This document shows, one piece after another, positions 5,781 to 62,773 of a stretch of 64,000 bases of DNA. Source of the DNA: Bispira polyomma (taxonomy: Eukaryota); assembly GCA_965649765.1 (NCBI GenBank), contig OZ287754.1:41788001-41852000 (forward strand), written 5' to 3'. The position numbers were made by a program, and so were the translations under genes. Numbering within the stretch: the first letter of the stretch is position 1; each line of letters starts with the position of its first letter. The notes beneath the pieces are model-generated. The model had not been told where the DNA came from. It searched no databases and worked only from the letters and a program-made list of their open reading frames with translations.

Positions 5781-8700
5781 CTACACTTCTTCTCTCTGCC
5801 TCCCCTCCAATGCAAAATGTCCATATGTGTAAACATAATGCCCTCTTTCTCCTAAATTTCTTGCACTGGGTGACCTGTTCTCTGTAAGGTTCACATTGTT
5901 TCCATCATCAAATCCATCATAGTACGGATTATCAACTAGGCTTCCATCCATGCCTGCCAAGTCACCAACATCAAGAGCATCATGAATCCTTGTTGTACCA
6001 TCCTTTATAGGCTCAGCATGTTCTCCACCCTCATTGTTCATATCACCTACCAACTTCATGCCTTCTTCGCTCTTCTTATTACTATCTGGTGATGGTCTGT
6101 ATTGATCATTTTCTACCATTGCTATTCTATTGTCAAAGCTTTTAACATTTTTGGTATTTGGATGATCCGAGTCAAGGTATGATTTACTTGATGGATTTTT
6201 TTGTGCATCATCATCACTTGAAACACGAGCACTCAAATGAGACATTGGCAATGGTTCATCATCAGGTAACATAAATTTGTCTTCACCTCTGACAGTTGAT
6301 AAGCAACATCTGTCAAAACAACAATCATATGTTGTTTAGGTGTACAGATGTATTGAACTTGTATATGCATAATAAAAATGTTGGTAAAAAAATAGTTATA
6401 TACATGAATCATATTTTTGCAAAGAAAGATGAAAGACAAATATAAATAAATAAGACCTAAATTTTTGTCATAGCAAATTCCTCATATTTTTAAACATGGA
6501 TGGTTATTTTGCTTTTTAGACAAGAGCTCACCAATTATAGTCCTGAAGAAACATAAGAAAGTCTACAAACTTACCTGAAGTAGAGCACTGTGCCTATAAT
6601 ACCAACCATTAGACTTATTGGGACAGCAACTGCCAAACCAACAACAGCTACATCAACAAAATAGAATACAATATGAAACTACAGGCAGTCAAAAAGTTTG
6701 CCAGTACATAAATGTATTTTTCACTCATAGATGGCTCCATGTACTTCCAGGTGAGTGAACAAGGTCCTTAATTCATAGAGGGATATGAAGTTAAAATTAA
6801 AATGCCCTCATTGAAGGACCTTGCACAAGGTCTATCCGCTAGCCTTCAGCCCAGTCCTGATAGAGAAACCAAAACATTGTTTTACTGTAAAGGTTACAAC
6901 TCCAGTATCAAGGTCGAGGTAATATTTATGGTGAAATATAAATTTGCCCTGGAAAGTGATGGGCCATGTCAACGGGTAAAAGTGACTAATATTAAGAATT
7001 CTGCCTTTTTTTACTTGTTTTCAAAAAGGACAGGAAAAAAGTATACCCTGAAATATTACAATCATACCATACACATTTAACTTCCCAGAAGCTGCTCTCT
7101 CTCTCTCTCTCTCTCTGTTATTTTTCTAACAAATAAGTAACACACAGAAGTGTATATTGTAGGAACTTTCCAACCAACTGGGGATATTTCTCTACTTTTG
7201 AGTTGCCACATTTACACAAACTGGTCTTGCTGCAGTCTCCCATAAGTTTAAATCAATTCATTATATGAAGGATGTTGCACATCCAACTATCCATAAATAC
7301 TTCAAACAGGTTATCTTGTACTATTTAAACAAGAAACTTGACAACTTTGAGATACTATCTAGTCAACTAAATTTTTGGCAATACAGAAAGGAGGCTATAC
7401 AATAGAAAAGTATTTGGGCCACATTATTGAAATAATAACTTAATTTAGTGAGATAGTATGTTGATTAATTGAGATATTATCTCAATAGATATTTTGTGGA
7501 TGACCCTAATACTTTTCCATAACGCAACAGTATCCAATATATTTTTTTGTTCACTGAGGAAAGACAATATTTTATGAGGCATAGACAAAAAGAGCAATAC
7601 TGACCTACTAGCAAAAAAATCTTTCTGTGACCAACCAGGTTGAAAAGTTTTTTTAGCTTTACACTAGTATTGTGCCTGGAAATGGTATTATGATAGATTG
7701 ATTGATTATGTGTTTAACATTGCTGTCAAGACATTGTATAGGTCATATATCACAACGGGCACTTTTATTGGTGGGGAAAGCAGTGCATACTAGTTAACTA
7801 GTTAGTCAGGATTCTGCACTGTAAAACACCGAGCACTGGCAAGTAAGTCCCAACTTCCCCATATAAAGCCTCTGCCAAGATTCAAACCTATGACCTCATA
7901 GGTGGGAGGCGAGTGTGTTAACTACTATGCCACTGAGTCTCCTATTTTAATATATTGTGACATTTACTATATGTTTTACCTTATTTTGGACCATATCTCA
8001 GTAACACATTTGTAAAAAATAAAGGCAACTTTTAAATTGAAATGAGCTTTTGCCCATGCACAAATATTTGCACAGTAAAAATTGAAAACAGTGAATGAAA
8101 TCCACAAATTGTAAATATGATTTAAAATAGAGCCGTATTTAATTCATGCGATGTATAGATGGCATCCATTGCTTCTTTTCTGCTTCTGTTGCTGACAAAT
8201 ATCTTATAGACTCTCTCACTTTTTTTCTAGATTATTTAGAAGTAAGTGATATTCAAAGATGTTACTGTAAAAATAATACACAATATATATTGCTTTTTGA
8301 AAAAATTTCTATTGCAAGTTACTTTTCTTCAAATATTGCGATATATTGATTTTTCAAAATATCATTATACCCTTACTTTACAGCATACAGTAAACAAAAA
8401 TCAGATTACCGTCTTCGCCATTTGCTGTATTGCATACATATTGTATTTTCACAGTTCTACTCCAGCAACTAATACTATTGCAGGAAGTACGGCATGACCC
8501 CATATATTTGGTGGGTAATGTAATCGTACAACTGTTTCTGCCATTGCATGTAGAGTTGGCAGTTGAAAGAGTCTCTTTTGTCTCACGGATGGCACACAAA
8601 GACTCTTCTTTGAAACTGCAGCATTCTGGTTTGTCGTCGACACAGCTGGAATCTCCAGTTTCTGTGGGTCTTATGTACACTATTTCATCTATGTAATCTA

Positions 8701-8887
8701 TCAGTGCATTGTTGGTGCCACAAGCTAGAGTAATGTGTATATCTAAAGGCTTTTTAGAGTTGTCATAATCTTTAAAACACTCCTCTTGTATGTTCAAAGA
8801 AAGGCAGCTTGCTGTGACATTGTTGTAACTGCAATATATACAGCACAACATACAAAATATTATTATCCTTGTCATTTTGACAAACAT
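5781..8887 (-). CDS. Receptor paralog A: signal peptide, SUEL-like 12-Cys domain, TM, NPxY/Tyr-rich tail; exons 8887-8410, 6647-6575, 6309-5781 (~359 aa)
   Basis: GT/AG junctions in phases 1 and 2; total 1080 nt, in frame; TM AVVGLAVAVPISLMVGIIGTVLYF; tail has DNPYY and GHYVYTYGHFALEGR; close paralog of B. The TM acceptor is inferred to be shifted by 9 nt. Confidence 0.72.
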
Positions 8888-9849: not shown

Positions 9850-11127
9850 CCCTTTGTCTCAAGTCTAAGGCTCAAAATGTCCATAAGTGTAAACATAATG
9901 CCCTCCTCTAGTGTCATCTACAGCCATTTTATAAGCAACACAAGTTGAGATTTCCTTTATTTTCTCACCGCCACCACTAGCGCATTCTGTATTCCGTTAT
10001 ATTTTCATTATTGCATCAACTTCTTTACCTTCGTAATATGGATTCTCTTCCAGTTTTATATGTTCATGGTAATCACATCTAATTTTGACAGTTGGCCATA
10101 GCATGAGTATTGTTAATTCCCAACCATGCCATTTGTTGCTTTGACAACTGCATTAGAGTTCTGCCTTTCAGAATGTGCCGCATCATGTCTTCTAACTTAT
10201 TTCATGCTTTTCAGGGAAATTTGAGACAGATAAAGAGCCCTCCAGTGTTTTCGTATTGGAGCTTAATCATTGGTCCACAGTATTTTTAAAAAGAAAATGA
10301 ATCATTATTTCCCCAAAAAGATAATAGTGTGACACATATATTGTTAGTTAAAGATATGTCAGCCAACAAATTAACATAAACCCCTTGACGACTTTGTCCA
10401 TCGCTAGCAGTCAATGGATAAGTTTATTCGCCAGTGCCATATGTCTGTCGGACATCAGTTGACAGTATAAAATATAACCATATAGCCATAGGAATAAAAT
10501 TCATTTGGGTACACTGTATTTGACGTTAAGAAAATTTGTGTCATTAATGATGTAAATAGTTGTTGCAAAAACGTCACCAAAGTGTAGCATTTTTCCTTGG
10601 TATTGTTGAATTGCTCTCCATCGGAGTTGAAGGGGCCAAGAACATTATAGCATTTGTTATTGAAGCCAGTACTTTTGTGTAGATCATTGTATTTCCTGAA
10701 TACATGGTGGCCCTCTGTCATTGGGTCTTATCCCTTGTGACAGGCAAAAGAGCCTCGACAGTTACCGGTGTTGGTATGCTCTACCTGGGTAGTCACAAAA
10801 AGGATAATTAGTGATTTGAATATCAGATTATAGGTTAATAAATGTGATGATTATAAATTTGAATTTAATAACATACATCTACTAATTGTATGTTGGTGAC
10901 TGACACAAATTTTAGTGTAGATTGCATCTTGCTGGCTTAAAAAATGAGAAAAAGAATTTTGCTGATTTTTTTCTGATTTATTCGTTTAGTAGTTGGTATA
11001 TAACAATGACAAGCTATCGACCATATATTAGGTAAGTATACTTTTACTCACCTCATCAATACCAAAGTACAAATTATTCCAGTCAACAAGCTCACTGGTA
11101 TCATTACAATTAAAGAAGCAGTTAACT
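9850..11127 (-). pseudogene. Receptor pseudogene C: 3' part of a D-type gene (TM exon 11127-11052 plus decayed tail exon ~10283-9850)
   Basis: TM exon intact and very similar to D; tail acceptor AG changed to AA; frameshifting deletion near the exon start; ends GHYVYTYGHFEP*; no ectodomain exon found upstream. Confidence 0.75.
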
Positions 11128-16590: not shown

Positions 16591-19500
16591 TCAGATGTTT
16601 TTTGTTTCCTGCACTTCTTCTCTCTGCCTCCCCTCTAATCCGAAATGTCCATAAGTGTAAACGTAATGTCCTCCTTTTCCTGAATTTCTTGCACTGGGTG
16701 ACCTCTTTTCTGTATTGCTCGCGTCGTTTCCATCTTCAAATCCATCGTAGTAAGGATTATCCTGTAGGCTTCCATCCATGCCTGCCAAGTCACTAACATT
16801 ACGTGCATCATGTATCCTTGTTGTACTATCCTTTATAGGCTCAGCGTGTTCTCCACCTACATTGTTCATATCACCTACCAACTTCACGCCTTCTTCGTTC
16901 TTCCTAATACTATCTGGTGATGGCCCATATGCCATGTATTGATCATTTTCTACCATTGCTTTTCCATTGTCAAAACTTTTTGACTTTATAACATTTTTGG
17001 CATCTGGGAGATCAGAGTCAAGGTATGATTTATTTGATATATTTTTCTGAATATGTGCATCATCATCACTTGAAACACGAGCACTCAAATTAGACATTGG
17101 CAATGGTTCATCATCGGATGACTTTATTTTGTCATCACCTTTGACAATTGATGAGCAACATCTGTCAAAGCAACAGTTATATGTTGTTTAGGTGTACAGT
17201 TGTATTGAACTTGTATAGTTTTGGTAAAATTATACTCATAAAAATTGAAGGTTCTTTTAGCTTTTTTAGACAAGAACTCAATAATTATAGTCATATACTA
17301 ATATAAGAAAATCTACAAACTTACTGAAAGTAGAGCAGTGTGCCCATAATACCAACTATTAGACTTATCGGGACAGCAACTGCCAAACCAACAACAGATA
17401 CATCAACTGAAAAAAATACAATATGAAACTAAAGCAATGACACTACTATTAGTGTTGCAAAGAAGACACTCAGGATTGCATTATTTAAAGGTATAGTAAC
17501 GTAAACACAGAAATACGTCGCCGATAAATCATACTGCATTTGCGCAAGTTTATTTTTATCTGTATACACACTATGGCAGCCTTAAAATGCTTCTTCAGTA
17601 AGGTTTTCACCTATTTTTATGTGTCTAAACAATTTAAAATGTTAATACTTTGCTATAAAACTATAAAAACACCCATGTAACCATTCTTATATTGTGACGT
17701 CACACAATTTGACCTCTATGGAGGAACGTCATATTTGTAAACAAATCTCGAAGACAAGCCTTTCTATTGTGACACAATACAAGTATGCAGACATATGCAG
17801 ACATTATATACACTAAACAACTTCAGAAAACATGTATATTATTTTGAATGATTTACATTTTTCAATATGTTTGCTTATTTTATAAAAACACAGAATACAA
17901 AACATGTTTTTGTTTAGGAGAGTGTAACTAATGTTTTTCTAAAATTATCCCCATTTTTGTGCACTTTTTAAAAAAGAATTCATTCAAAATAATGCTGATG
18001 TTTTCCTTTTTCTATTCATGTACAATACTTCAGTATTGATCCCTTTTTGGTATATGAATTGTGTCACGTTTGTGAAGCATGTACTTTGAAAATATTACCC
18101 ATTTTAGTTACAATTTTATACACGGCTATATGTATTGTATGTCTCAAGATACCTATTAAAATGATACGTAAAATATATGAATTAGTATATAATTAAAATA
18201 TATGTCATTCTTTATTATTTCTACTCCTGGAAATGTAAATATGTTATCTATAAATCGAGTTTAAGGCCACAAAGAAAAAGTTGTGCAGTTTCTGAGAAGC
18301 TCGAGCACATATGACTGTTTATCGGCGATCGTTTTTTGTTTTTACGTTACTAAAACCTTGACATCAGCAACACATTTTGCTCCAGGCATCAACATACGGT
18401 AAAGTGGGCCTTGTGGCGGAATGTTTATACACTCACTTCCTACCTCTACAGTCGTGGGTTTGAATCTCGGGCCCTGGTGTGTATGTGGGAAAGTTGACTT
18501 ATAGATTTGCAGAAGGTCAGTGGCTTGCAAGGCAAAAAAACCTTGACTATCTACCCTGCTCTAATATCCTCCACCAGTGAACTGCCCATCGTGATATGGA
18601 AAGACATGTCAAAGTGACTTTAAACCTAAACTAAACCCAGCCTGAGGAAAAACGTGTATTTACCAAAACGTGTGGTGAGGCCTGCTAGGACATTGGTGAG
18701 AGTTTTTGTGCTAGGCCAAATCAGTTTCATAGAAAGTATAGTACCCACTAGAGACGCCCTGGTAGTACTGTAATTTATCAAAAATACTCAAACTATTCTT
18801 GGTAGACACCATCTGTAAATTAATCTAAAATACAGTTTTTACTAATTCTATAATGTTTATATCCAAGTAGATTTTAGGGCCTTTGTTACCTCTCTGATCA
18901 CATCCACTGTTTGTCCTAGCCCCAGCAAATACACTTTCTGTGGCACTACGGTCACTTGTTAATTCTGCAGTGGCCGTTTCAGTTGACAAACCGCCACCTC
19001 CAGCATCTGTTTAAAGAATTTATTTGGAATTATGTATACTTTAACAGGCATACATTTGCTGCTTGTTGAAATTGTTTGACACAGACACAAAGAGACACAA
19101 AAGAATGTTGTACTTAATCGAACACTGAGTTAATATCTATAGGCGCATCATTCCTGATAGATTAGTTTGGATGACTCCATTGTTTTGAATATGTCTGGTG
19201 TTATACAGCAGGAAGTCAGAGCAGTATAAGTGATTAAGATAAGCGGATTTTTGACAAGTGTTGTCATAAACTTGTCCACTTTTTTAGGTTTTCATGAAAA
19301 ATTAATCTTAAATTTTAAGCTCTGATAAAACACAATAAAAAAACAGCTTTACTTCACTTGAAACATATTTACTTATAATTACCAAAGATTTTGCTGGCAT
19401 TTAAGAAGCTTGAAAAAAGTGGACAAGTTTATAACATCGGACAAGATTATGACAACCCATGTAAGTACATGCTGAAAGAATACAATTATACCATACGCAA

Positions 19501-22500
19501 TTACCTTCCCAGGAGCTGGAGCGCTCTCTCTGTAATTTATTAAATAATACATAGAAGTATATATTGTAGGAAATCCCAAACCAACTGGGTTCTCTACTTT
19601 CGACTTATCACATTTTCACAAACTAGTCTTGCTGAAGTCTCCTAAAAGTTCAAATCAATTGGTAAAATGAAGGATGTTCCACATCCTACTGTCCCTGAAT
19701 ACTTCAAACAGGTTATAGTTTACTACTTGAACAAGAAAAATGGCAAACTTTAGACACCATCTATTCAACTCAAGTTATTGCAATACAGAAAAAAAGCCAT
19801 ACTATAGAAGTTTTTTGGGCCACCTATAGAATATAATTATATTTATTGAGATAATACCTAATAATTTAGTGACATAATATGTCCATTAATTGAGATATTA
19901 AGTTGATTAATCGAGATATTATCCCAATAGACATTTTTAAGTGGATGACTCTAATAATCTTCCACAATCCAACAGTACCTGATATATTATATTGCTCACT
20001 GAAGAAAAGCAATCGTATTACAATAATTGGGGTTTAATATTGCTTTAAACACATTTTATCGGTACTACAATGAGAGAAAAGCAGTGCATATTAGTTAGTT
20101 AACATTCTGCACTGTAAACCACTGGGCATCAACAAGTAAATGCCAACATTTCCCACATAAAGCCACCGCCAAGATTTGAACCTGCAACCTCAGGCAAGTG
20201 TGACAAACACTACGCCACCAAGCAGTCCATGCACAAATATTTGCACAGTAAAATCGAATCATTTTAGAACACCAAAAAGTGAGTGATATTTACTGTGAAA
20301 ATGACATTTCGACAAAATTTGTATTGCAAAATATTGTTTTAAAAATATATTGGGATATATTAAGGCTTTAGTAACGTGAACACATAAACGGCCGGAGAAT
20401 AAGCATGTTATTTTTACGAAAGTGATTTCTAGTCTATGATGATTTTAAAACTACACTTTAGTAACCTTTTTAACCATTTTTATATGTCCAAACAATTTAA
20501 AAGAATAATACTATGCTACAGAATAATACTATGCTACAGAATAATACTATGCTACAAAAATATAAAAACACCCACGCCACACAATTTGAAAATCTATGTA
20601 GAACGTCATATTAGCAAACAAATCTAGGAGAGAGCCCCGTCTATTGTGACACAATACGAGTATTGATTCAACACAAATGCAGACATTATATACACTAAAC
20701 AACTTCAGAAAACATGTATATTCTTTTTAATGATTTACATTTTTCAGTATGTTTCCTTTGCACATCACGACCCAATAGGGGTCTGATAGTTCAGTTCCTA
20801 AACCCCCTCCTTCTTATTCTAACACTACCTTAATTGGCTTAGGTATCCTCTCCTTTCTTCGCTCTATCCCTTTGTGGCACCCAATTAGGGGCCCTCTCTG
20901 CTTTGACTTATTTATCCCCCTTTTCCACCATATTGAATTAAGTGATTCAACAGGCAACATCAAGAAATTTTAAATTTAAAAATACTTGGAAGAGACCTTT
21001 TATTTTTACTTGAAAGTGTTTTTATATATTTTATAACTAGTTTATAGTGTTGCAAATATGGGGAGGACAAGAAAGACCCCTTTGAGCGTGCCACTTAAGG
21101 ATAAAAAACATGCACCTACCAAGAAGCTGACAACTTCTGTTTGTGTTTCGGATCCGATAGCCATGAATTTAGAAGGATTATTAAAAGATATACGGAACCT
21201 AATCCGACCGGCAGTAATCAAGCTAATCTCAGGGACGTCATGGCTGTGCTTCAAAGGTTAGAAACGGCAAATTCAGATATCAACAGACGTCTTGACAGAG
21301 TCGAGTCCTGTGCATGCAGTTCTACTCCCGTTGGTTCACCTTCCGCCTCCAGAAACGGATCCATTTCGAACAAACGCCAGGCGGGCCAATTTGCACTCCC
21401 GATACCTCCCACTCGAGACCCTGCTTATCATCAGCCTAGGGCGTCGCACCACGACTACCAGAGAGATGGCATTATATCCAAAGTAGATGTCTTAAGATCA
21501 CTCCCAGAGGTAACTGCAGCCGTGAATCTCTGCCTCACTACTTATGACGCCCAGCTGCGTACAGAACTTACCCAAGGTAAGCCATTACTGCGACAAAAGT
21601 CGCGACGTTATCATACCACCGACATCGCCAATGCGGATCCACAACTCAGGTGGCCGAATGAGGGTTGTACTGGGGTATCTAGCAAAAAGAGACCCGCGTT
21701 TGACGACCTAACACTTCCCCAATGGGCAGCCGAGCAATTATTAAACGTATCTCAAGTCCAGGACCAAACTTTACTAAGACAAATGCTTGACCAGGTGATT
21801 AACTCGTTGAAGGACGCTTCCTCTCTCCCATAGCCAGCAGTTAGGGCGGCATGGGCCGCTAATATGCAAGAGGTGGAGGAGGGGCGAGATGCTACTCAAT
21901 GGGCGTTAACACGTATGAGCGTTTCTCAGCCAACAGTTTTGAACAGCCAGCATACAAGTACAGGAGCGGTTTCTCAGAAGGGCAAGCTACTGTGTAAGTT
22001 TTAGAACTTTGGCAAATGTAATCAGGAAGGGGATAACGAGCAGTACCGATATATTTGTTCCTACTGCCACAGAGATCTTAACATGGATGCTTCCCACCCG
22101 GCAGCAAAATGTGAAAAAAATAACACAAAAGCTAATCAGAACCAGGAAAACAAAGCCTAGGGGTACAGTCAACAGCTAACTGAACGAACAATTAGAAAGT
22201 GCAGGTATCTGGGTAGTAGTGTAAATAATGTGGTTTGTTCTTGTGATGAGTATAGGCAGCAGAAAGTATATAGAACTGTAATTGACAATGACTATACTTA
22301 ATTGTGTTTTAATAATAGCAGTAATGTAGTAGAATCTCAGACAGCTTGTGTTTTGGCCAACTTAAATGAGGGTGTTATGGGCTGTGATGAAGGAGCACAT
22401 AATGACAGTATTTATCAGAGCAATGTTAGTGATCAGATATTACAATTTTCTGTAAAAGGCATTACCTCTGGAGTAATGTCCAGTGATTATGATGTAGAGT

Positions 22501-25500
22501 GTAATGATATAAGTACTGAAGGTAACGGGGTTACCAAGGGTAACTATCAATTACATAATGACAATTATAAAAGTAATAATCAAAGTCACGGTGGCATAAG
22601 TTCCTTGGCTACTGTGTCCATTTGTAACTGGATGAATCAAGGTATTCACAATGTAAATAATATTGTCTATCTAAATGTGCATGATTGTCCCAGGGCTTCC
22701 GGTTTCTGTTACCCAAATTTTGGTGCTGATGGTTCTTACCAATTTAATGCTTGTGGGCAAGTCCCTGACTCCTATTTGGAGATCATATCAACTATAGAGA
22801 TAAAGGTCTATATTGATCCAACATACTGGGCTTACAACTAGTACACTTTAGAACAAAGGCAGCATGCCAATAATGTCCATTACTATCATAACAGAGACCT
22901 GGAATGGAATGGCACTTATGGCTGTGATTATACGCAGCACGTTGAAAAACTTATTGATGGTATAATTGATAGAGATGATTCCACTGGGGATAATAATAAT
23001 GCACCCATGCTGGAAACTGACAGTGAACCTGACAGTGCAAGAATCACACCCGTCCGCTCTTCTGACAAACAAGCTGACTGGTCAGGTGACCAGGACAGCG
23101 AATATTTCACTAGTTTGATCAAACATGGCAAAAGGCATACTTCACTTACTGATAACAAGGCCACTGATATTCATGATAATGCAAAGGCTTTCTTAAGCTA
23201 TCAAATGTGGATTTTGAATTTACTGGCCCAGATAAGGAACCTTTGAGTATCACTACTGTTGACAAAATGCTAGAAATAACTGAAATTATTAGAAACACAG
23301 GTGTTCCCAATTTTAGGGCTGCCAGAATTCCTTTAAGTTATGGCCTCAACATTAAGGCTTGGGAAAACATACTTACAGATCATCACAACAAAATACTATT
23401 ACAGTACCTCAAGTTTGGGTTTCCTCTGTCTCTGGAAAATCCTCAACTACTGCATAACAACAACTTGAACAATCACCACTCTGCTACACAATACCCTCAA
23501 GAGGTGTTTAAGTATCTTGAAAAGGAAAAGTCTAAGGGTGCCATATTGGGCCCAGTTACCCAGATAACAGATAACCATTATCATACTTCTCCCTTGTTAA
23601 CCAAACCAAGACATTGACAAGTGTAGAATTATTTTCAATTTATTTTATCCTCATGACCTCTCAGTTCACAGTCAGGAACTAAGTTTGCCCTCAGGTTTCC
23701 TACCATAGATCACATTACTGAGGCAATTAGAAACACCAATGAACCAGTTATGTTCAAAACGGACGTTTCTAGGGCCTTTAGGAACCTCAGGGTTGACCCT
23801 GTTGACGCGGTGAAGTTAGGCATAAATTGGGACAATAAATCATATGTCGACGCTGCCGTGGCTTTTGGCTGGGCCCACGACAGTGCATCTTTTCAGCGCT
23901 GTTCAAACATTATAGCCGATTACATGAAGGATCAAGGGTTCACATTGTTCTGTTACATTGACGACTATGCATGTATTTGCAATAGAGAAAAGGCCAGTAA
24001 GGGTTATGACCTTCTTCATGACATACTTCTGAAGCTTGGTCTCCCCATCAACCAAGAAAAATCAGTTCTTCCTGGTACGTTTACAACTTTCCTAGGCATA
24101 GACATAGACATTCAGGAGGGCATTATTAGCATTAATCAAGACAAGATTGATTCTATTTACCATGAGCTTCAGGCCACTGTTCAAAAATCCTGGTTATTAC
24201 GAACAAAATATCAATCTATGGTAGGGAAACTCCTATGTGTGCATAAGTGTGTCTGCCCTGCCAGAATCATTATAAACAGACTATTAGCTGTGTTTAGGGA
24301 TAACCCTCAAGCCAAACGCTTTAAGGTTACACACAATATAAGACAAAATATTGCTTGGTTCTTATCTTTTCTTCCTATGTACAATGGCATCACATATATT
24401 ACACCCAAGGACATTCAACATATGCAAGAATTCCACTTAGATGCTTGTCTGACAGGCTTTGACGGCATTTGGGATAAGGAAGTATATGCCACCCCTATAT
24501 ACAACATTTACAACAAAACTCTGGCCATCACACAGCTAGAAATGTTGAACATCATTATAGCTTTGAGGTTATGGAGTAAAAACTGGGCCCACCAGAGAGT
24601 CACAGTATGGTGTGACAACCTGGCCGTGGTGTTAGTTGTTGACACTGGTAAAACTAGGGATTCCTTTCTTGCCATATGCATTAGAAACATATGGCTTTTA
24701 GCTTCTACCTTTGACATAACATTGAACATAAAACATCTTAGGGGTAAGAAAAACATTAAGGCGGATGCTTTATCCCACATTCACTCTGCCAATTCCCCCA
24801 ATGCAGATATAATGAGAGAACTAAACACTTATTCATGGAGACACATACCTGTAGAGTTCTTTAACTTAAATTATGTTATATAACTACAGGTGCAGCACCA
24901 TCAACCTTACCTTTGGCTCTGGCAGCAGTTCAACGACTAGATGCTGCTTTGAGGCCATCTACAAACAGTGCATATATCTCACAGTTCAAGACTTATTTAG
25001 GGTTTTTGCATTATTCAGGCCTGCAGCAGGTCTCAGTACATTCTATCCTGGCTTTTCTGGAGTACCTTACCCAGCACAATATTTCCCCAAGGTAATGAAT
25101 AATTATGTTACTGCTCTCAAGTTTATGTTCTCTAAATATAATCTAAACACACAGGTGTTAACCCACAAGTAGCTGTCAATGTTCCTTAGGAGCCTGGCAC
25201 TCTCATCAAACTTCAAGCCTCAGAAAAAGGGGATCTTTGATCTAGTGATGCTTCAAAATATCTCAAGAACTTGTTCAATACTCAATGACCCAATTTTATA
25301 CAGGGCCATCTTTCTAGTTTCTTTTTCCGGTTTCTTAAGGATGTCAAATATCGCCCCCCATTCCAGGAGTAGGTTTGACCCTACAAGACACTTCCTGAGG
25401 CAAGATGTAGTGTTTGGCCGACCAGGGGCCCATCTCATTCTCAAGTGGGCTAAGAACATGCAGAATAGGACTGATACTCATGTAGTTTAATTACCCATTC

Positions 25501-40936: not shown

Positions 40937-40969
<33 letters not shown>

Positions 40970-42024: not shown

Positions 42025-42865
42025 GATCTTCTATGTCTATAGGTATAATTGTGCAAACTATACAGTATATGTTCTGTGTGTAAAGGTTTACATATCCAAA
42101 CTATACAATATATCTTCTATATCTAAAGGTTTACATGTCCAAACTATACAATACATCTTCTATGTCTAAAGCATTACATGTCCAAACTATACAGTATATC
42201 CTTTATGTATAAAAGTTTATATGTGCAAACTATACAATCTATCTTCTATATGTATAGGTTTACATATCCAAACTATACAATACATCTTCCATATCTAAAG
42301 GTTTACATGTCTAAACCTTACAATATATATCTTCTATATCTAAAGGTTTACATTTCTAAACCATGTAATATAACTTTTATGTCTAAATGTTTACATGTCT
42401 AAACCATACAATATATCTTCCATATATATAAAGGTTTACATGTCCAAACTATAAGTATATCTTCTATGTCTAAAGGTTTACATATTCAAACTATTCAATA
42501 TATCTTCTATATGTAAAGGTTTACATGTCTCAACTATACAATACATCTTCTGTATGTAAAGTTTTACATGTTCAAACTACACAAACTATCTTGTATGTCT
42601 AAAGGTATACATGTCCAAAGTATATCATATATCTTCTATGGCTAAAGATTTACATGTCTAAACTATAACATATATATTCTATATCTAAAGGTTTACACAT
42701 ATCTTCTATGTGTAAAGGTTCACATGTCCAAACTATACAATATATCTTTTAGGTGTAAAGGTTCACATGTCCAAATTATACAATATATCTTCTATGTCTG
42801 TAGGTTAACATCTCCAAACTATATAACATAAATTCTATGTCTAAAGGTTTACATGTCAAAATATA
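42025..42865. repeat. Minisatellite with ~40-bp unit, ~20 degenerate copies
   Basis: Unit tcttctatatctaaaggtttacatgtccaaactatacaata(ta) repeated head to tail. Confidence 0.9.
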
Positions 42866-43084
42866 CTATGTTAAAAGCGTTCACTTCATAATCACAGGCC
42901 TCTCACATATGTAGGTTTATTTCTGGGGGGTTTTTTTCCTTCACATGGGAAAGTTTATCATGTATTTGCCATAGGCCAGTGGTTTCCCACACTGTTAAAT
43001 CTGACCTTCATAGTATGACCTAACCTGTTCAAAGCCACGTAAAAGCCAACTAAATTCAAGTCAAAATCCAAACTATACAATCTT

Positions 43085-46000: not shown

Positions 46001-47395
46001 CATTCTCTGCTTCTAGAGTTGATTCTGGAGGGTGGAATCAATTACATATTTAGAAAAAGTATGGTTGTAATTGTATTGTTTATTTGTTGTATTTTATTCA
46101 AATTTATACTCATTTATCTACCTTCATCTCATATTCAAAGTACTAATATTTAAAGCACTAATTATTTTCTTGACTGCTAACCAGCAACCATAAAGTAGCA
46201 TTTCCCTAAATAAAGAGAGAGGCTTGTGGATTGCCATTACCTTACCGTCCCCAAGGTTATTAACCCTGCAACTGGGAATAGGACAAAATGTCCAAAAACT
46301 GCTACTTAAGGGGGTCATCCAAGCCACTATTCATATGCCTTTACATGGTCACCCTATGCTGGGATTGAGCTCATGTCCTTTGTGTTCCTAAGCGAGTGTT
46401 TTACCCACTGAGACACAGTGGTATATAATGGTAGTAATAATTTAATGGACTCATTTAGACTTGTTATGTCTATAGCTTTTTTTCTGTAATAAAGGTCCAT
46501 CGTTAAGTAAGGTCCCCCCCATTTAAAGAAAATTTTGTATCACTTAATACCAATGTTTCAGGTACCATACTAAAATAGAATGGAAAACACATCTCTTTCA
46601 GGCAGTGTTGAAATTAGTAATAATATGATTTGTCTTCAATAATTTAATTATAATGTAGATCAGCATCTGCATTTTATTGGCCTTACGGTTATACAAACAG
46701 TAATTTTGAGGGTAGTTTAGTTGTGTTATACATATTACTATGATCTTTAACAATATGTTACAGCGCCACATATCAACATTGTTTTCTTTAATAATAGCCT
46801 CCCTTTTGGAAAACGCAAAGCACTGTATATAAGGCTACATGATATTGTGTTACTAAATATATTTTAATGTTAATGATTTTGTTACAACTTGTAACTTACC
46901 AGTTCTCTTGTAGCATGTGTAGGTTACTTTAGCCGTTCTGGCCCAACAGGATCCATCAAAGCCACTGGCCTTACAAGAAACTCGAATTTTACAGTCATTC
47001 ATATGCAATGGGCTTATGGTTAACAGACACTCCTCCTTTTCTTTGCAAGTATCAGTAGCATTTATAGCTAATGTATCATTTGCCTGGTAAGACAATAAAC
47101 ATACGGCATTGTATTCAAAGCTACAGCATCTGGTGTCAGACTCATTTATACAAACCTTGTCTCCCATACCATATGGTCTGATATATGTCACCTCAAGTAT
47201 ATGGACCATATCTGAAGGCTCACATGACAATGTAAGGTTGATATCCCTCGGCGGTGCTGTGTGTTTAGTTGTAGAATCCCAAAAACAGCCTTGCACTGTC
47301 CCACCAACTGTAGTTAACCTCATGACTTGGCTGTGAATATATATCAGAAAAAAACCTATACCAAACCAGTGCCGGTTTATGTTGGAAATAAACAT
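43085..47395 (-). CDS. Receptor paralog E; exons 47395-46900, 46024-45971, 44145-44070, 43541-43085 (~360 aa)
   Basis: Canonical junctions, phases 1,1,2; 1083 nt in frame; TM IIIALGVAVPVCLLAGIAGTLLII; tail has ENSYY, ENPYY and GNYMYTYGYFGLEGR. Confidence 0.8.
45400..45634 (-). mobile_element. CR1/L2-group LINE ORF2 C-terminal fragment
   Basis: Translates to CDAYKFSFFSQTIPLWNNL, typical of the ORF2 C-terminus. Confidence 0.6.
45650..45903 (-). mobile_element. tRNA-derived SINE with 15-bp TSD
   Basis: TSD ttgaaaaaataacga at 45635-45649 and 45904-45918; A-box-like tggcctattgg, B-box-like gagtttggatcc; caaatt repeat tail. Confidence 0.8.
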
Positions 47396-52810: not shown

Positions 52811-55800
52811 TCAAAGTACACTGCCATTGGTGTCCTTTGTCAGTTCTCTGTGCCTTCCTTCAAGTCTAAAATGTCCATATGTGTACACATAATTCCCCTC
52901 TCTGTCCTTATCACTAGACTGTTTATTCTTGTTATTTTCTGTTTCCAGTTCAAGGTCATCAGCGCCATCATAATATGGATTATCAGACAGTTCTACCTCT
53001 TCTCCTGTGATTTCTGTTCTGTTTTTATTTCCTGCCTGTTCAAGGTCATCAGCGCCATCATAGTAAGGATTATCAGACAGTTCTACAGCTTCTCCTCTGA
53101 CTACTGTTCCGGTACCTTTCGCTGGTTTTTCAATCTCCTCATGAGCGGCCTCTTTCAGATCTCCAAAACCTTCATAATATGGATTTTCATTCAGATCTTC
53201 TTTTTCTTCTTCTGCCATGGTTGGCATACAGTAGGTGTCATCATCAAGCTCAGAATCTTTGCTTGTTTCTTCTATTCCAGCACCTTTCTTTGGTTCTTCA
53301 AGTTCCTCATGCACTGGTTGCTGGGATTCTCCCAAACCTTCGTAATAAGGATTTTTACTTAGCTCTCTTACATTGATGGATTCTTTCTTTAAACTTGGTT
53401 TACATGCATCCTCCTGCAGTATAGTATACTCTCCCTTTGTGTTTGGTTGGTCCACTTGTTTAGGAGAACAATAATCATTTGTCTTTGGATCCGCATCATC
53501 ATACATATTATCTGTAGAAGTTCTCATCATATTTGTTTCAGCATGGTTACTTGTTCTATATATTGACGAGTGACACTTGTTTTTGGCTGGTGATGAGGCA
53601 TATCTAAAAAGTTATTATCATCAGTACAGAAGTTTATAATGAACAGAACTAACAATGACGTGTGTTTTTTTATTCCATATTTTTAGTTAAACGTTTTACT
53701 AGAGTGTGCTTATATATATTTGTATTTGGAAACAATAACAATGGTTATAGTTTGAAATATTTTAATAAAACTAAAAAAACTATAATGAAATGACTGAATC
53801 TGTTCTTTAACACTACATGCATCACTACTTTACCTAGACAAACCATAGCTAATTCATTCTTACCTGGAATAAAGAATATGTGAGATTACCCCTCCAAAAA
53901 AACTGATAGGAATCAACACCGCCAAAATGACTGCAACAACTGAAACACACAATACATTGCTTTAATTATTTCAATCTCCGAATATTTAATTTTATGAACT
54001 CAGTTTCATTCTTTTCATGTCTTATTCCAAATTGTCTCCAAATTAAATCCAAATTTTTTTACCGACCCACTCTGATAATGTGATCCAGATTATCACCCTC
54101 ACAAAGTTTTGATAATGGCGCTAAATTCTAAAAATAAACTTAATGTCAGCTGGCCAAGAACTTAGATTAAACAGACTATAGGATGCTAGACACTTTTAAT
54201 TTCTGGCAATAACCATAATTATGTTATTTACCATTACAAATTTATTTTCTATAAGCTTAAGATTTCTTTGAAAACCTTTAAAAAGAATTGATTACCTAAA
54301 TACTGGCTACTAGATGCCTGTTTTAAATCTTCACATGCTGCTTGTCCTTTGGCTGTAGGATTTTCACTGGCACTGACTGTAGTTGTAGCTGGCAAAACTG
54401 CTGAAACACAGGAAACTACAAGTTTATTTACAGTGATTTTCACTAAGAAACAGTAGTATCATGGTATCCCACCTAAATCACTAGATGTAAATCTAGGTAT
54501 TAAACAGCAGTGGAACATCAACCACAGTTCTATGCTCAAAAGTACGTATGTACAGCACAAACTATAAATCATGAACACCAAGGCTTTTGACTAGCAGATG
54601 ACGGCATTTGTTGAATGCTGAAGTAGTCTTTAAGCAACTCCAGTTGTCTGTAACCTATTACTGAAAATTGTTCTTCAGTTCCCAGCAATAGTTTTATCTT
54701 GGGATCAAAAGGGTAAGTAGTTTTGGTAGTCTTAGGCATATGAGGGTTTTTATATCAGTGCCAACCTTGGGTTCCAGAATCCATTATTTTGACATCACTA
54801 TCTGAAGTTAGGCTTTAAGATTACAAATAAGTACATCTTTTTACCAAAAAAGATGCAATTTTGGACTTCGTCTACTGCTATAGACCATTCAGGGGTCACT
54901 GGTTGTGTCTGATGCATTATGGTTAAAGCTTGCCCCTTATTTTGCATACAATGGTTAATTAATTTTGTAACTAATCTAAAGGTGTGTCTTTTTAACATAC
55001 AGTACTTAAAGCAGTAATAGTTAATTATTATAAGAACAGCTGACAGGGGTCTTCAAAATTTAGCATCTCAATGTTCAAAAATACCAGAATATAAAAAAGT
55101 TCTAGACTTTTTTGGTATTGACTGGACCTTTGTCCAGAATTTAGAGCAGACATATGCAGAGCTGTCATAAATTAGGAACCATAAAAAGATCTATCAGCCA
55201 ACGTAAAATGTCACCACAGTCAACGTCACAATTAACATGTGGATGACATCAGATAATATACCATTTCTTTACGTCACAAACTTGGAGGGTCTTTCCCACA
55301 TTGTCACGGAGATATTAGCTTTGCCAGGTATTTCTCGTATAATCTCAAATGCCTAAGTCTCCATGCACACATCCCTCACAATTAAAAAAACAAAAGGGGG
55401 GTCTATTATTAAATAATTTACTTAACATATTAATCTTGTTTCCTTAACAAGTAACAGATAATTTCATGACAAGTACATATTGGAACTATATTGTTTATTC
55501 TCATAATTCAAAACGGTATCTGTGAGGGATTGGTTAGCCTGCAAAACGATGGCGTTGTGAGGATGTGTGTGTTTCCACACCTCAAAGCCTAGTGAACAGG
55601 TAGTTTCAAGTATAATATATAATACATGTGATAATACAATACCATTTACCACAAAGTTCATGTCTTATGTCACTATGTATTGGATAAAATATAACTTTTA
55701 CCTGTTGTTGGTCTTCCTGGTGTTTCTGTATTCCTACTGTTGGTGATTTCCCTAGTCATTTCACTGGATGCTGAAGTAATCTTCGTGGAAGGCATTGTTG

Positions 55801-57543
55801 ACAATGTAACTGTGGTTGTGTTTGTCGTTGCTTCAGTTGTTGATGATGCTGTGCTTTGGGCCATTCTAGTTGTGGGGCATTCTGTATAGAAGTATAGTAC
55901 AACCTCTATTATCTGAACCTCAGTTATCCGAATACTCAATTTATGAACCCATTTTTATTTCTAGAAAAATAATGATTTCTCACTGTTTTATACAGAACTG
56001 CCTCTTCTATTTTATGAATCATCACTTATGCAAACAAAATGTTGCTGTCCCAACATTTTCAGACAATAGAGGTTTTGCAATTGTGACACTTTTTACTGCA
56101 GCATTTTTGTTGAGTGACAAACTTTTCCTAGATATTATTATTATATTTATTGGTTCACATAGCTTAAATATTTTCTTTCCGAAACCTGCCCAACATTAAT
56201 ACCAAGCAAGCTATACCAATTTGGTTGGCAGTAAGAGTTATACCCATGTTAAACCCATTCATTAAATTTTCACGAATAAATATATCCTTTAAATAAGCAA
56301 AAACCAAACCAAGACACAGGATGGCAGAAGGAAAAGAATGGCTCCCAGGTCTTATAGGACATTAAAACTCAGTTCTTACCACACTGTGGACAATCACTTG
56401 AAGTACTTGTAGTACAGGGATTCTCAGTATGGGGGGTTGGCGGCTCTGAACGGTCACAAGCTACAAAAATAAGAAATGTTCACATAGCTATGGACCCTTG
56501 CTTAAGGTAACAATACTTGTTTTGATTATATACAAGACCTGCCAATATAACTGATAGGTATTTTTTTAACAAATATATCTAAGTAGATTTCACTGTTTAT
56601 AATAGTTCAACTTTTAAAAAACAAACAAAAGTAGTATAAATACTCTTAAATGTGGTTTAACTATGACAAAGCTGTGCTAATTAAGTAGACTTAACCCTAT
56701 GCAAAAGTCTCACACATTATTGCTTGTATAATCATATTGGATGTTTTGTGTTTGTATTTGATATATATCTAAATGCAATATTTACTCACTGAATCTGTGC
56801 CTAAAAAGTAACAGGAACAAGTACAACATTTTATCACTACCATTTTCTTTGTAAAGCTACGAGTTAAAGATATGTACAGTAGTTTTCATTGAAGTTTATC
56901 TCAGATACCAGTGCATATTGATTTGTATTCAAAAGTTACTTTGGCCTTGTTGACCAATTTGAAATTGATATTTTCCTGGTATAATTGTTATGGTAATGTA
57001 ATTAGTTGAATGTAATTTAACATTCGATTTCTTACAATCGTTCCTACAGAGGTAGTTCAACTGTAGTAATCTTGCCCAACACCATAGATTGTTTTTATTG
57101 TTCGTCTTGCAGTCCTTCTGACAGTCTTTGTCTAATTGTACTGACCCCATTTCTGTTGTACAAGTTGTTTGATTCTGGCAATTATTTATGATTTTCATGA
57201 TTGTTGTAAACTTTAGTGAAACTATACATTTTCTGATGATACTGTCCTCTTGTTCCCAGCTACCTGCATCACAACATTGATTATATGTAGTGGCTTCAGC
57301 ACAAGGCTGGTCACTCCTCAGACGTGGTCTTATATAGAATCCATTGATGACATCGATTATAGAATCCTGGCAGTTTAGGGTTATGTTTATAGTACCTTGT
57401 GGCTTTCTGGAAGTTTCCGTCCAAAAACATTGTGTCTTAGACTTGTATTCTAGCAAGTCTGCATGTAACAAAGATTTAAGAAAACATATTCCAATAATTT
57501 GTGTTTTTATCCAATAAAAAACTTGTTTACCAGTAGGATACAT
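52811..57543 (-). CDS. Receptor paralog F with long mucin-like stalk; exons 57543-57036, 56460-56380, 55881-55702, 54400-54296, 53939-53864, 53603-52811 (~580 aa)
   Basis: Canonical junctions; stalk exons of 81, 180 and 105 nt all phase 1-1; Thr/Ser-rich exon; TM VVAVILAVLIPISFFGGVISHILY; four NPYY motifs and GNYVYTYGHFRLEGR; 1743 nt in frame. Confidence 0.8.
55892..56085. mobile_element. Tc1/mariner-pogo-like MITE; related fragment at ~1120-1278
   Basis: agtacaacctctattatctgaa...ttcagacaatagaggtt TIRs. Confidence 0.55.
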
Positions 57544-57720: not shown

Positions 57721-57909
57721 NNNNNNNNNNNNNNNNNNNNNNNNNNNNNNNNNNNNNNNNNNNNNNNNNNNNNNNNNNNNNNNNNNNNNNNNNNNNNNNN
57801 NNNNNNNNNNNNNNNNNNNNNNNNNNNNNNNNNNNNNNNNNNNNNNNNNNNNNNNNNNNNNNNNNNNNNNNNNNNNNNNNNNNNNNNNNNNNNNNNNNNN
57901 NNNNNNNNN
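57721..57909. other. Assembly gap (189 N)
   Basis: Run of n. Confidence 0.99.
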
Positions 57910-58269: not shown

Positions 58270-59460
58270 TATATGATATGTATTATTGGGATGCACGGTC
58301 ACAATGCATCCTAAGATAAAACACTAAGAGAGCATGATGCCCCTACCTCTTATCTTGCTATTTAACTTGGTATGCCCTGTGATACTTCCATAATGCACCC
58401 TTTAAATTTTAATACCAACACTATATTAGTTAATATGTACTGTTAAAGTGTTATTTCATTTTTAACCTGAATTTAAGGTAATATGCACTGTTAAAATGTT
58501 ATTTCATTTTTAACCTGAATTTCGGTTAATATGCACTGTTATAGTGTTGTGTCATTTTTAACATGAATTATTAACAGCCTGTACAAGCATTGTTTAATTT
58601 TCAACAGTCTATCAAATAGTATCATATCTTTTTTACTGTTGAACACGATATCACCATTTTGTTTAAATGCCCCGAAAGCACCAGAGCGCCTAAAACTATG
58701 GAATGTGTAATTTTGTGACTGTAACTTAATAAAGTTCAAAACCTTTTTGAAGTGCCTTCTTGCCATGGAGTCTGTCAGTATAGACCTGCAATGCTTGTAT
58801 GTTTGAAACAAGATGTCATTGAGACTGCATAAGGTGAGTGTTGCCCCGCCCCTTTTTTTATTAGGGGCCTTTATATTGTCACTATATTTAAATCTATCTC
58901 AATGGACTAGGGTAACAGTTACATTCTGCCCATACCCCTGGGCTATTCATTTGGTTTTAGGTGGTTTTTTTTTTTTTGCGATTTTTGCACTCAGACCCAG
59001 GATGCATGTTCGATTTTCCCTCCAACGCAAAACATGCATAACAGATATGTTTATGGAAAGTGCACGCTGTTTCGTGGCTTTTGGTATTCTTACACTGGTT
59101 CTTATTATAAAAATTGCATTCATGGAATTTGTTTTCTGACTACAACTACTGCTCTGCCTTTTACTTTAGTAGATAGCAGTACTATTAACACTAGCATGCT
59201 TTTAAGCATTAGACCTTCGCGTCCAGTCTATCTTATCTACTGACGTTCAATTATCAATCTTGTCCTGCTCCATTCTACAAAGGAACACTGCATGGCTGGC
59301 CTTTGTCGATGGCCAGGAAAAGTCCCAAGCCTCATCGAGCAATACAATTAAGTACTCGAGCATATGCTCTTATTCAAGTGAAGTTGGCCAAGATTTGGAG
59401 GGTAACGGTTTTATATACGTTTCAGAGCTTTTCATCAGTCAGGTTGTGTGATCAGACATA
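58270..59460 (-). mobile_element. Degenerate DIRS/Ngaro-like remnant (gag and YR fragments); boundaries approximate
   Basis: FHSFRRSGA YR motif in ORF 58539-58811; the minus strand also reads LLDEAWDFSWPSTKASHAVFLCRMEQ and CNFYNKNQC..H..HICYAC. Confidence 0.72.
58432..58571. repeat. ~48-bp tandem repeat, ~3 copies
   Basis: aatatgcactgttaaaatgttatttcatttttaacctgaatt units. Confidence 0.75.
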
Positions 59461-60499
59461 AAGTCATCTAGAAATCTAGACATGGAGGTAGGTAAGTGTA
59501 TTAGTATATATCGAACCTAAAAGGTTTGAAAGTGACAATGAATCCAAATAAACTCAAACTTAAATTTTAGCCAGGCTGTTCACCTAAACAAACCTAACCA
59601 GGCATTAAATCAATCTATGTCTTAAGAATGCTGATATGGTTTCAACAAGTTCTTAAAAAAATTTTAATTTAGTTTCAACATGTCCTTAGAACATTTAAAG
59701 TTTTCTCATAACAAATGATATTTTTATTATTTCTTATTTTAGTGCTTGTTTTTTATTATATTAAATTCTAAGGCGTTTGGTTAGCTAGGTAGTCAGTATC
59801 AACAAGTAATAGATCATTAAACAAATGTGTTTTTAATTTGTGATGGAAGAAATGTAAGGTAAGAGCTGTCCTAATGCAATGAGGTAAACTATCCCACAGG
59901 GTAGGACCATAAGATGCAAAACTTTTATCAAAGTGAATCTTTGTTCAATGTATTCTGAACTTACAAGTGGGAATGTAACAGAAGTAGAAACCTCAAATAT
60001 AGCGATGCAGTGTATTAATGTTTTTATTATTCAGAGGAACCTGACAAATTTTACTTTTAAGTATTTGGTAACCTACTACATTCATCTTGAGTGTTACTTA
60101 ACCAAAGATAACATGAGTAGATATTACAACTTATTGTGCCACTTGTTATTCACTCTTCACCGTCTAAGTAATACATGGATTTTTGTATAGAAGATGATGA
60201 AGAAAAGAAAAAAACTACTTTATTCCCTATTACATATTTTAATATTTTACTTTCTAATACAATATATTACATGTTTCAAACACAGCTTTATGTTATTCCA
60301 ATAGGGTTTCAGGTGTTATTAAGGGATTATCTCTAATCAGGTGAAATGCAAATGTTGAATTTGGGATTAAATTACTTACTTATGATGAATAATATATTCT
60401 AAATAGTCAGTTGAAATTATATCAGCTATGATCACTACATATACATTCTGTATATTTAACAAGTTAAAATAATTTCTGTCATTAATGTATATTATTCTA

Positions 60500-62773
60500 C
60501 TTAATCTCTTATTCAGCGATAACTGTGTCGTCATAGTATGTGTCATCATTAAGCTCAGCATCTATGCTTGGATCTTCTGTTCTAGTCTTTCTTTGGTTCT
60601 TCAAGTACTTCTGGTTGCTTGGATTCACCAAAATTTTCATAATATGGATTTTCATTTGGTTCTTCTGCATTGATGGATTCTCCCTTCAAACCTGGTCTGC
60701 ATGCAACTTCCTGCAGCATGGTATACTCTTGTTTTTTGTTTGGTTGGTCCACTTGTTCAGGATGCTGATAATCATTTGTCTTCGAATCAACATCATCATC
60801 CATGTCTTTTGTAGAAGTTCTCACCATATTTGTTTCAACATGGTGACTTATTCCATATGTTGACGAGCGACATTTGTTTTTAGTTGATGATGAAGCCCAT
60901 CTAAAAAGTCATTATACATTAGTTTATAATCAAAATATTTAAAAAACTAACAATGATGGGTTTTTTATTACATGTGTATGTGTACATTACAGTTGGCTTA
61001 TATACTTTGTATTGTAATTGGAGAAAATAACAATTATAGTTAAATATTTTAATAAAACTGAAAATAAAATCACTCAATCTGTTGTTTAACACTACCGGCA
61101 TTACTACTTTATCATAAACCATGGACGAACAATAATAGCTTAGTTCTCAACTCGAAAAAACAATATGCGAGATTACTCCTCCAAGGAAGCTGATAGGAAT
61201 CAACACCGCCAGAATGACTGTAATAACTGGAACACACAAAACAACGCTTTATTAATTATCTCATTATCCAAATATTTTATTTTTTAAACATAGTTTTGCT
61301 CTTATTTATATGTCTTTTATTCCAAATTAGTATCCTAAATGTAAGTTGGCTTATCACTTATATTTACTGGACTATTGGATGTCAGTCACTTTAATTTCAG
61401 GAAACAACCATGATTATGTTATTATGTTATTTATTTGTGACTATAAGCTTAACATTTCTGTGAAAACACTTAAATATAAAGTAAATATGAAATAGTTAAT
61501 GTGAGAGAGAGACATCAATGAAATAAATAAAAAATAAAATTACATTAAAAATATGTAATACAATACAATACTGCAAAGCTGAAAATAATTTCTTGAATAT
61601 TTAATTGGATCTATAATGTTTGGATTCATTCATTTAAAATTGTGTATATAATTTGCAAACATAGTGGAATATCTTGTTTAACAATGCCTTGCACTGTCCC
61701 TGATTGCACTATTGGATTGTATACTGACAATCTTTGACTTTCTGCAAAACTATTAGATTGTATACTGACAGTGTTTGACTTTCTGCAAAACTATTAGATT
61801 GTATACTGACAATCTTTGACTTTCTGCAAAACTATGATATTGTTTACTGAAAATGCTTGGAGAGATTATTCATGATGCCAACCAAACATGAAAATATAAT
61901 AAGACAATTGTTTAACACATTTAAAATGGAAATAAGGTGGCAGCCAATTAGATTGCTTTCTATTACAAACAATAACAAATGCACATGTGAAAACTGATTC
62001 ATCCTGCCCAGTACTTTTTTCTGTTAATCTTTCCACTGGCCACTGATGTGAAAAATGCTTCTGCTCGTTTAAATCAAAGGTACCGCAGATATATTAGTAA
62101 ATTTGTTTTCGAAAACAGGTCCAAAATCAATTCCAAGAATACAAAACCCATGCTAAACCTATTTATTAAATAGGTCAAATATATGTGAAGTATATTTCCT
62201 TTGAATGAACAAAAACCCTTTTAATGTTAGTAGTTAAGGCGGTTTTTCAAAATAGGTCTAAAATCAATCCCAAACAAGCCATACCCTTAATAAACATAAG
62301 TTTTAAAGTTAATGAAGATGATATGCAATGCTTTTTCTCTAAATTAGTGGAAACTTTTTCTACATATGTAGGTATGGCAGCCATGTTGTTTTTAAAATGT
62401 TGTTGTTTTCCAAAACAGGCCTAAAATCAATTATGAACATACTATACCCATGCTGACCATATGTTTATAATTTCCTTTAAATAAGCAGAAACAGAAATCA
62501 ATCCTAAGCAAGCTATACCCATTTGGTTGGCAGCAAGCGCTATACCTATGCTTAACCCATTCATCAAATTTTATGAATATATATCTAATGTACTTTTCCT
62601 ATAAATGAGTAAAAACCAAACTAGGAACCGAAATAGTAGAATAAAAAGGAATAGGTCCCAGGTAACAGGGGACATTTCAACACAATCCTTACCACATTGT
62701 GGACTGTCACTTGAAGTACATATAAGCCAAGAATCCTCAGTGTGGGGGGTTGGTGTCTCACAAGGGTCAGAGG
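60500..62773 (-). pseudogene. Receptor pseudogene G (F-type): exon 62773-62693, TM exon 61226-61151, truncated tail exon 60900-60582
   Basis: Exons homologous to F; TM donor GT changed to TT; premature TAG at 60582; homology ends ~60500 so the C-terminal motif is lost; 180 and 105 nt stalk exons not found; ectodomain exon not in the window. Confidence 0.7.
61709..61853. repeat. 41-bp tandem repeat, ~3.5 copies
   Basis: ctattagattgtatactgacaatctttgactttctgcaaaa. Confidence 0.85.

Follow-up and report, generated by a model that had tools for sequence, protein, structure and literature searches.

What a tandem cluster of divergent single-pass receptors does for its bearer is the question raised by a 64,000-nucleotide (nt) stretch of the Bispira polyomma genome (GenBank assembly GCA_965649765.1, contig OZ287754.1, positions 41,788,001 to 41,852,000 of the forward strand), which was analysed at its full length and is referred to here as the window. 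Invertebrate genomes often contain clusters of divergent single-pass receptors, and the original prediction had assigned this one to non-self sensing or phagocytosis. Our analysis points to a receptor family whose ectodomain appears to be a remodelled SUEL/rhamnose-binding lectin (RBL) fold and whose cytoplasmic tail ends in a constant tyrosine-containing motif. We consider the chances about even that its members are type I membrane receptors detecting variable, probably foreign, ligands.

Six-frame scans and profile searches recovered five ectodomain exons, seven transmembrane (TM) exons and seven tail exons or tail remnants, all on the minus strand. Together they form seven co-oriented copies, five of them intact (genes A, C, D, E and F) and two broken (B and G), as had been predicted. 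Exon joins were made in silico for frame and length, and single exons were used in database searches. The intact genes show a GT donor and an AG acceptor at all junctions and no internal stops, with splice products of 359 amino acids for gene A (8887-5781), 380 for C (27291-16591), 392 for D (40924-35684), 360 for E (47395-43085) and 594 for F (57543-52811). Their common exon plan places a phase-1 intron behind the ectodomain exon, with a TM exon of 73-82 nt, a phase-2 intron and one tail exon further on. The predicted product opens with a signal-like N-terminus, followed by one disulphide-rich SUEL/RBL-fold domain, a stalk encoded by zero to three exons, a single TM helix and an acidic tail of low complexity. 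Hydropathy is the sole basis on which signal peptides were judged, and the signals of E and F are weak.

The exon plan as first proposed stands for the splice phases, the TM exon and the single tail exon, and has to be amended for the stalk. No stalk exon was found in genes A and C, D has one (38237-38287, 51 nt, symmetric phase 1, 94% to its paralogue), E has one (45971-46024, 54 nt), and F has three: a Cys/Pro/Thr-rich exon at 56380-56460, a Ser/Thr-rich, mucin-like exon at 55702-55881 and a third at 54296-54442. The stalk exons of D, E and F are kept in their paralogues. An intronic block common to A (7039-7568) and C (19463-20013) at 72% matches the D stalk exon in position; no stalk exon was found in it, and an exon with weak splice sites could escape detection. 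The TM exons of the intact genes lie at 6575-6647 (A, phase 1 in and phase 2 out), 17325-17406 (C), 36768-36843 (D), 44070-44145 (E) and 53864-53939 (F).

The first exon of each intact gene encodes a putative signal peptide together with the SUEL-like domain (A, 8410-8887; C, 26802-27291; D, 40438-40924; E, 46900-47395; F, 57036-57543). Because five methods agree, none of them strong alone, we read the receptor ectodomain as a remodelled SUEL/RBL fold, in line with the SUEL-like domain that had been expected. HHalign related the ectodomain profile to SUEL at 95.4% (E 5.6e-9), all four PDB sequence matches were RBL proteins (best E 0.0068), and PF02140 was found in 21 of the 30 matches among Atlas language-model neighbours. 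Pfam PF02140 itself matched only 4 of 15 members, the best E of 0.00093 not reaching the curated cut-off. Structure prediction and fold search, suggested earlier as a check, likewise point to the RBL fold. With the AlphaFold model of the gene D ectodomain (predicted local distance difference test score, pLDDT, 79), eight chains were found at Z >= 5. Seven were RBL lectins, latrophilin lectin domains, P113 and a beta-galactosidase C-terminal domain, the last two of which we take to be SUEL-like; the eighth was a Plasmodium RIPR complex. VIA-align of the model against CSL3 gave Z 6.7 and a root-mean-square deviation of 3.5 over 89 residues, a Z of 6-7 being middling by itself, and Foldseek matched lectin domains with a probability of 0.96-0.99 at an E of about 0.02.

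Compared with SUEL/RBL proteins such as CSL3 and SUL-I (PF02140), the receptor ectodomain shares the fold and the core cysteine pattern, but it is longer and richer in cysteine (about 135 amino acids with 12 Cys, against about 100 with 8 for an RBL domain) and differs at the residues associated with sugar binding. Functional RBLs carry YGR, DPC and KYL motifs as well as eight cysteines (PMC10817417). None of the three motifs occurs in the 15 ectodomains; YGR is replaced by (Y/F)-(I/L/V)-R-P and KYL by W-(S/A)-R, and DPC is absent. All 15 rows have Phe or Leu in place of the Glu that follows the first Cys, and the loop-2 Lys position (Lys120) is occupied by Arg in 14 of 15. In the latrophilin RBL domain, changes of E42 and the K120R replacement abolish or nearly abolish binding (PMC2430599). 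Since these Glu and Lys positions are known from latrophilin to matter, canonical rhamnose or galactose binding by the ectodomain is unlikely, and with YGR, DPC, KYL, Glu and Lys lost, we reject the reading as a conventional rhamnose lectin. The binding site of RBL domains is loop 2 adjoining loop 1, and receptor RBL domains have been argued to bind non-sugar ligands (PMC2430599); the ectodomain described here probably binds a ligand other than rhamnose.

The cluster extends beyond the window. On its right, D', E', F', G' and H follow, that is, a duplicate of the D-G block and one further gene, bringing the whole cluster to 12 copies in about 130 kb. A false haplotype duplication of the block was ruled out by the 4-25% DNA difference between paralogues and by distinct insertions. 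A genome-wide profile search (1.035 Gb) gave 23 ectodomain matches at E < 1e-5, of which 15 were members of the search profile; they correspond to about 22 genes on chromosomes C5, C7, C8, C9 and C10. Receptor-family loci are absent from the 146 genomic PF02140 matches. Canonical SUEL domains, with no fewer than 146 matches and many of these in tandem arrays (C2, C3, C4, C8, C9 and C12), form a large expansion of their own in this genome, separate from the receptor family.

Several outlying copies display peculiarities of their own. In gene H (L007:5548-6196) the ectodomain exon is split by a 649-nt GT-AG phase-1 intron with a direct repeat of about 10 nt on either side; the exon is unsplit in the H orthologue of a second assembly, ENA ERZ22147071. 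The intron looks like a recent gain by insertion, or else a gene-breaking insertion. G' (L006:4037-7265) retains its ectodomain exon and TM donor, carries the same tail frameshift as G (60582-60900) and may thereby code for a receptor whose short tail has a single NPxY and lacks the terminal motif. A chimeric broken copy at C7:41.227 Mb (L015:5411-5957), 0.56 Mb off, combines a lone A-type, frameshifted ectodomain exon with an F-type stalk end and a TM exon.

Among 1.84 billion database proteins, a profile search yielded 46 matches, 19 of them at E < 1e-10, and no protein in it joined ectodomain, TM segment and tail in one chain. Among 30 matches examined, 29 had no name and came from ENA or Logan assemblies, and the one named protein was a canonical multi-SUEL protein. 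A Pfam scan of single receptor exons gave no match. A word-index protein search likewise gave none for the ectodomain exon or the tail motif; it covers proteins of similar length only and is uninformative on longer kin. The Atlas search with the tail reached a best score of 0.84 and was uninformative.

The HSP70 of the genome is 66-72% identical to those of molluscs, nemerteans and a brachiopod, which points to a probable lophotrochozoan. More can be learned from ERZ22147071, which holds the nearest HSP70 match by identity (78%). Two of its genes follow the order ectodomain, TM segment, tail, and they share both the splice phases and the terminal motif with the genes here. This conservation of architecture across species may serve as the best available stand-in for transcript evidence. 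Orthologues in the two assemblies are 50-52% identical in the ectodomain, 39% in the tail and 76% in the last 25 residues. Because both subfamilies and architecture are shared across assemblies, the family is, on this comparison, old, with recent turnover overlying stable subfamilies; it is probably lineage-restricted. The proposed birth-and-death evolution is supported by tandem duplication and pseudogenes, and is qualified by one-to-one subfamily partners in other assemblies, so that turnover is not uniformly fast.

Divergence within the family is concentrated in the ectodomain loops. Among paralogues, loops 1 and 2 vary at 74 of 130 non-Cys sites (57%), compared with 76 of 347 sites elsewhere (22%; Fisher p 9e-13). 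With a shared synonymous rate, the nonsynonymous to synonymous rate ratio (omega) is 1.78 in the loops versus 0.44 in the core (p 0.002 against omega 1); core estimates are about 0.44-0.51 overall. These values suggest, and do not prove, positive selection on the loops. Pooled pairwise omega is 0.68 (0.52-0.93) for the tail, 0.76 for the tail body and 0.28 (0.10-0.71) for the tail motifs, which on this measure are under purifying selection. The earlier picture of divergent ectodomains with fixed tail motifs is accurate for the preserved C-terminal motif and the loop-focused change; it does not extend to the tail body, which between species is less conserved (39%) than the ectodomain.

The duplicated block offers a closer view of this process. 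Its most divergent coding part is the ectodomain exon: F and F' are 79% identical there and 96% in the tail and 3' flank. In the triplet F, F' and G', F' sides with G' in the ectodomain and with F in stalk, TM segment and tail (p 5e-10). Because these groupings conflict, the triplet, as far as such comparisons reach, shows exon exchange or uneven homogenisation among F, F' and G'. Similar exon exchange has been described for the Hydractinia Alr genes (10.1101/2022.03.04.482883). Tandem paralogues, pseudogenes and exon exchange, as in polymorphic recognition loci, are all found here.

The tails are acidic and tyrosine-rich. Their exons lie at 5781-6309 (A), 16591-17161 (C), 35684-36248 (D), 43085-43541 (E) and 52811-53603 (F), and all five encode the C-terminal motif. 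NPxY occurs once in A, C and E, twice in D and four times in F, where it arose by internal duplication, against 0.01-0.05 expected from shuffles. The prediction of NPxY-rich tails is right in that the motif exceeds chance; "rich" fits F only. Neither H nor two other paralogues have an NPxY, and both tails read in ERZ22147071 lack it as well. What remains constant is the terminal YxYTYGHFxLEGR, with six invariant positions over 13 sequences from two assemblies. Because H and both ERZ22147071 tails lack NPxY and keep the C-terminal motif, the family mark is, judging by the tails at hand, this terminal motif and not NPxY. It fits no consensus of the immunoreceptor tyrosine-based activation, inhibitory or switch motifs (ITAM, ITIM, ITSM); longer tails outside the window contain scattered single matches to these. 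A YxxF lies inside the terminal motif and could presumably serve a Src homology 2 (SH2) domain or a sorting adaptor. No description of the terminal motif was found in the literature searched, coverage of which was incomplete.

In the genome, long open frames scoring with the terminal motif and without a family ectodomain match nearby were found at C7:10.04 Mb, C8:33.1 and 53.7 Mb, C3:47.5 Mb, C2:74.06 Mb and C1:39.81 Mb; the motif may thus be present on other receptor types.

The idea of phagocytosis had come from engulfment receptors, in which NPXY recruits the phosphotyrosine-binding (PTB) adaptor CED-6/GULP (PMC4055271). The relatives without NPxY argue against phagocytosis as the core function of the family. 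CED-1, Draper and Jedi-1 resemble the receptors described here in carrying NPXY in a single-pass receptor tail (PMC4055271), but they have EMI and EGF repeats with ITAM or YxxL, whereas the NPxY of the present family has a distal position, varies in copy number and can be dispensed with in relatives. Membership of the CED-1/Draper/MEGF10 group was rejected, there being no EMI or EGF-repeat Pfam matches.

Other known systems share parts of the architecture. Like the ectodomain here, that of the single-pass EVA-1/EVA1C (C21orf63) is an RBL ectodomain without sugar-binding residues (PMC2430599); EVA-1 differs in having two RBL domains and in being a guidance co-receptor, against one remodelled domain and many tandem copies here. 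With one RBL domain per gene and no PF14851 match on the tail exons, membership of EVA-1/EVA1C was rejected. Latrophilins (ADGRL) have a protein-binding lectin domain of the same fold, with teneurin and TOL-1 structures among our matches, but are seven-pass G-protein-coupled receptors with further domains that the present family lacks. The rhamnospondins of Hydractinia are RBL-domain genes diversified by duplication and proposed to act in immune recognition (PMC3269628), but they are secreted and carry thrombospondin repeats without a TM segment or tail.

The closest parallels in organisation come from other folds. In Hydractinia, the Alr genes form clusters of highly divergent single-pass receptors whose tails carry tyrosine motifs, and pseudogenes and exon exchange occur among them (10.1101/2022.03.04.482883). 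Alr proteins have immunoglobulin (Ig) and fibronectin type III-like domains with ITAM or ITIM, in contrast to the RBL fold and different motif found here, making this an analogy and not a homology; Alr membership was rejected since the fold search points to RBL and not to an Ig fold. In the Biomphalaria PTC2 and GRC clusters, single-pass genes of comparable length have diverged from one another and are linked to the recognition of parasites (PMC7494358). PTC2 proteins contain no known domain, lack homologues beyond the gastropods and owe their definition to allelic polymorphism; the present cluster was read in a single assembly. Our best guess, by analogy, is that the family works like the Alr or PTC2 clusters. 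Judged by fold and domain content, it is within the RBL fold superfamily and not a member of EVA1, latrophilin, Alr, PTC2 or Draper. As predicted, it matches no named family: no named counterpart for the combination of domain and tail was found in the databases, nor any account of it in the literature searched (with incomplete coverage), and the variable receptor family appears to be undescribed.

The two broken copies retain different remnants. Copy B has a TM exon with its splice sites kept (11052-11127) and a D-type tail remnant at 9860-10283 (ends approximate), which has lost its acceptor and carries frameshifts as well as stops in each of the three frames; an ectodomain exon was not found for B. 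Copy G has a homologue of stalk exon 1 (62693-62773), a TM exon whose donor GT is changed to TT (61151-61226) and a tail exon shortened by the frameshift that it shares with its paralogue G' (60582-60900); no ectodomain exon was found within the next 15 kb. Between F and G, an intergenic assembly gap (57721-57909) lies 178 nt upstream of the F start codon and interrupts no modelled exon; both its flanks are colinear, in the same orientation, with the duplicated block further along the chromosome.

The first intron of gene C contains the remnant of a tyrosine-recombinase (DIRS/Ngaro-like) retrotransposon on the plus strand (17593-26742, ends approximate from split direct repeats). It has gag-like, reverse-transcriptase (RVT_1, E 2.6e-10) and tyrosine-recombinase frames, several with stops, and a weak integrase match (E 0.04), and is not part of the receptor. 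Minus-strand gag-like or recombinase-like fragments at 30213-31023, 33808-34536 and 58542-58898 have no Pfam match and are probably older retroelement remnants. Between D and E, at 42026-42866, there is a tandem array of about 16-19 copies of a 43-nt unit, which the duplicated block has too.

How might such receptors work? The ligand, kinase, adaptors and tissue in the following scheme are those we infer, and the anatomy and evolutionary pattern behind it are displayed by the sequence. Each paralogue would bind a different protein or unusual glycan via loops 1 and 2. Binding would cluster the receptor, a tyrosine kinase would phosphorylate the tail, and PTB adaptors at NPxY, together with an SH2 or sorting adaptor at the terminal motif, would pass a signal on or bring about uptake. 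Microbes or parasites would be the most likely source of the pressure on the loops. In its most specific form, which we hold only tentatively and consider clearly less probable than foreign-ligand recognition as such, this would be an RBL-fold innate recognition system with ectodomain exons swapped, two loops diversified by selection, signalling through an undescribed terminal motif, and short-tailed partners such as G' acting as decoys or dampers.

A role in non-self recognition is plausible, at about even odds, and a number of observations weigh against it. Variable loops would be expected of any fold, and the loop limits were drawn after the alignments had been seen. When the loops are given their own synonymous rate, their omega falls to 1.11, which is not significant, and pooled pairwise omega for the whole ectodomain is 0.80 (0.61-1.07). 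A site-model test was rejected as proof of selection: it is formally significant, but assigns an implausible class omega of 149 to 3% of sites, and the tails are significant too. All window tails lack ITAM, ITIM and ITSM consensus matches. In the tree, several subfamilies pair across assemblies with strong support. EVA-1, the known single-pass RBL receptor, acts in guidance and not in immunity. EVA-1 and latrophilin are, moreover, non-immune receptors with SUEL-fold domains that lost their sugar residues (PMC2430599).

These points lead to the strongest rival, which we regard as possible and as about half as probable as the recognition of foreign ligands: that the receptors bind the host's own proteins in cell-cell identity, guidance, adhesion or gamete recognition, with a host ligand for each subfamily and a tail connected to PTB adaptors. 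Stable orthologous subfamilies and window tails without ITAM or ITIM agree with this, as do the latrophilin lectin domains in complex with teneurin and TOL-1 among the structural neighbours; protein ligands have been suggested for RBL receptor domains that lack the sugar residues (PMC2430599). A recently duplicated block, pseudogenes, change focused on the loops and exchange of ectodomains are unusual for guidance receptors, yet they fit gamete or self-recognition genes, and the tails show no FAM176 match. The tails could also belong to endocytic or scavenger receptors, with NPxY and the terminal YxxF sorting cargo into clathrin pits and little signalling taking place. NPxY and YxxPhi are standard internalisation signals (see also PMC4055271), and the YxxF is located within the terminal motif. 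This explanation is unlikely in view of the tails of H and relatives without NPxY, of a 13-residue motif with three tyrosines that exceeds the need of a sorting signal, and of tails of 150-450 amino acids, which suggest a scaffold.

Slightly less likely still is mostly neutral turnover, in which a few old genes are functional and the extra window copies drift under relaxed selection. A nearly-neutral model does put about 72% of ectodomain sites at omega 1, the tail body has an omega of 0.76, and two of the seven window copies are dead. Against this stand the constraint on the ectodomain core and tail motifs, and reading frames and splice sites that have remained intact at 75-90% DNA identity between copies. 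It is very improbable that the exons are not joined as modelled, the pieces being a separate secreted domain or chance open reading frames: the full chain is seen in no database protein, but nine modelled genes here and two of ERZ22147071 repeat the arrangement, with the same order, orientation and splice phases.

Invertebrates have repeatedly built variable recognition receptors on different scaffolds, Ig in Alr and unknown folds in PTC2, and a remodelled RBL fold would be an additional one. The family would also provide a test case for the long-standing idea that receptor RBL domains bind proteins. A terminal motif that stayed fixed as the remaining tail drifted points to a specific, findable adaptor, and remodelled fold, loop-focused change, exon exchange and fixed motif together make the family concrete and testable. 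Pfam does not detect the family and its homologues in databases carry no annotation, so that standard inventories of immune genes would overlook it.

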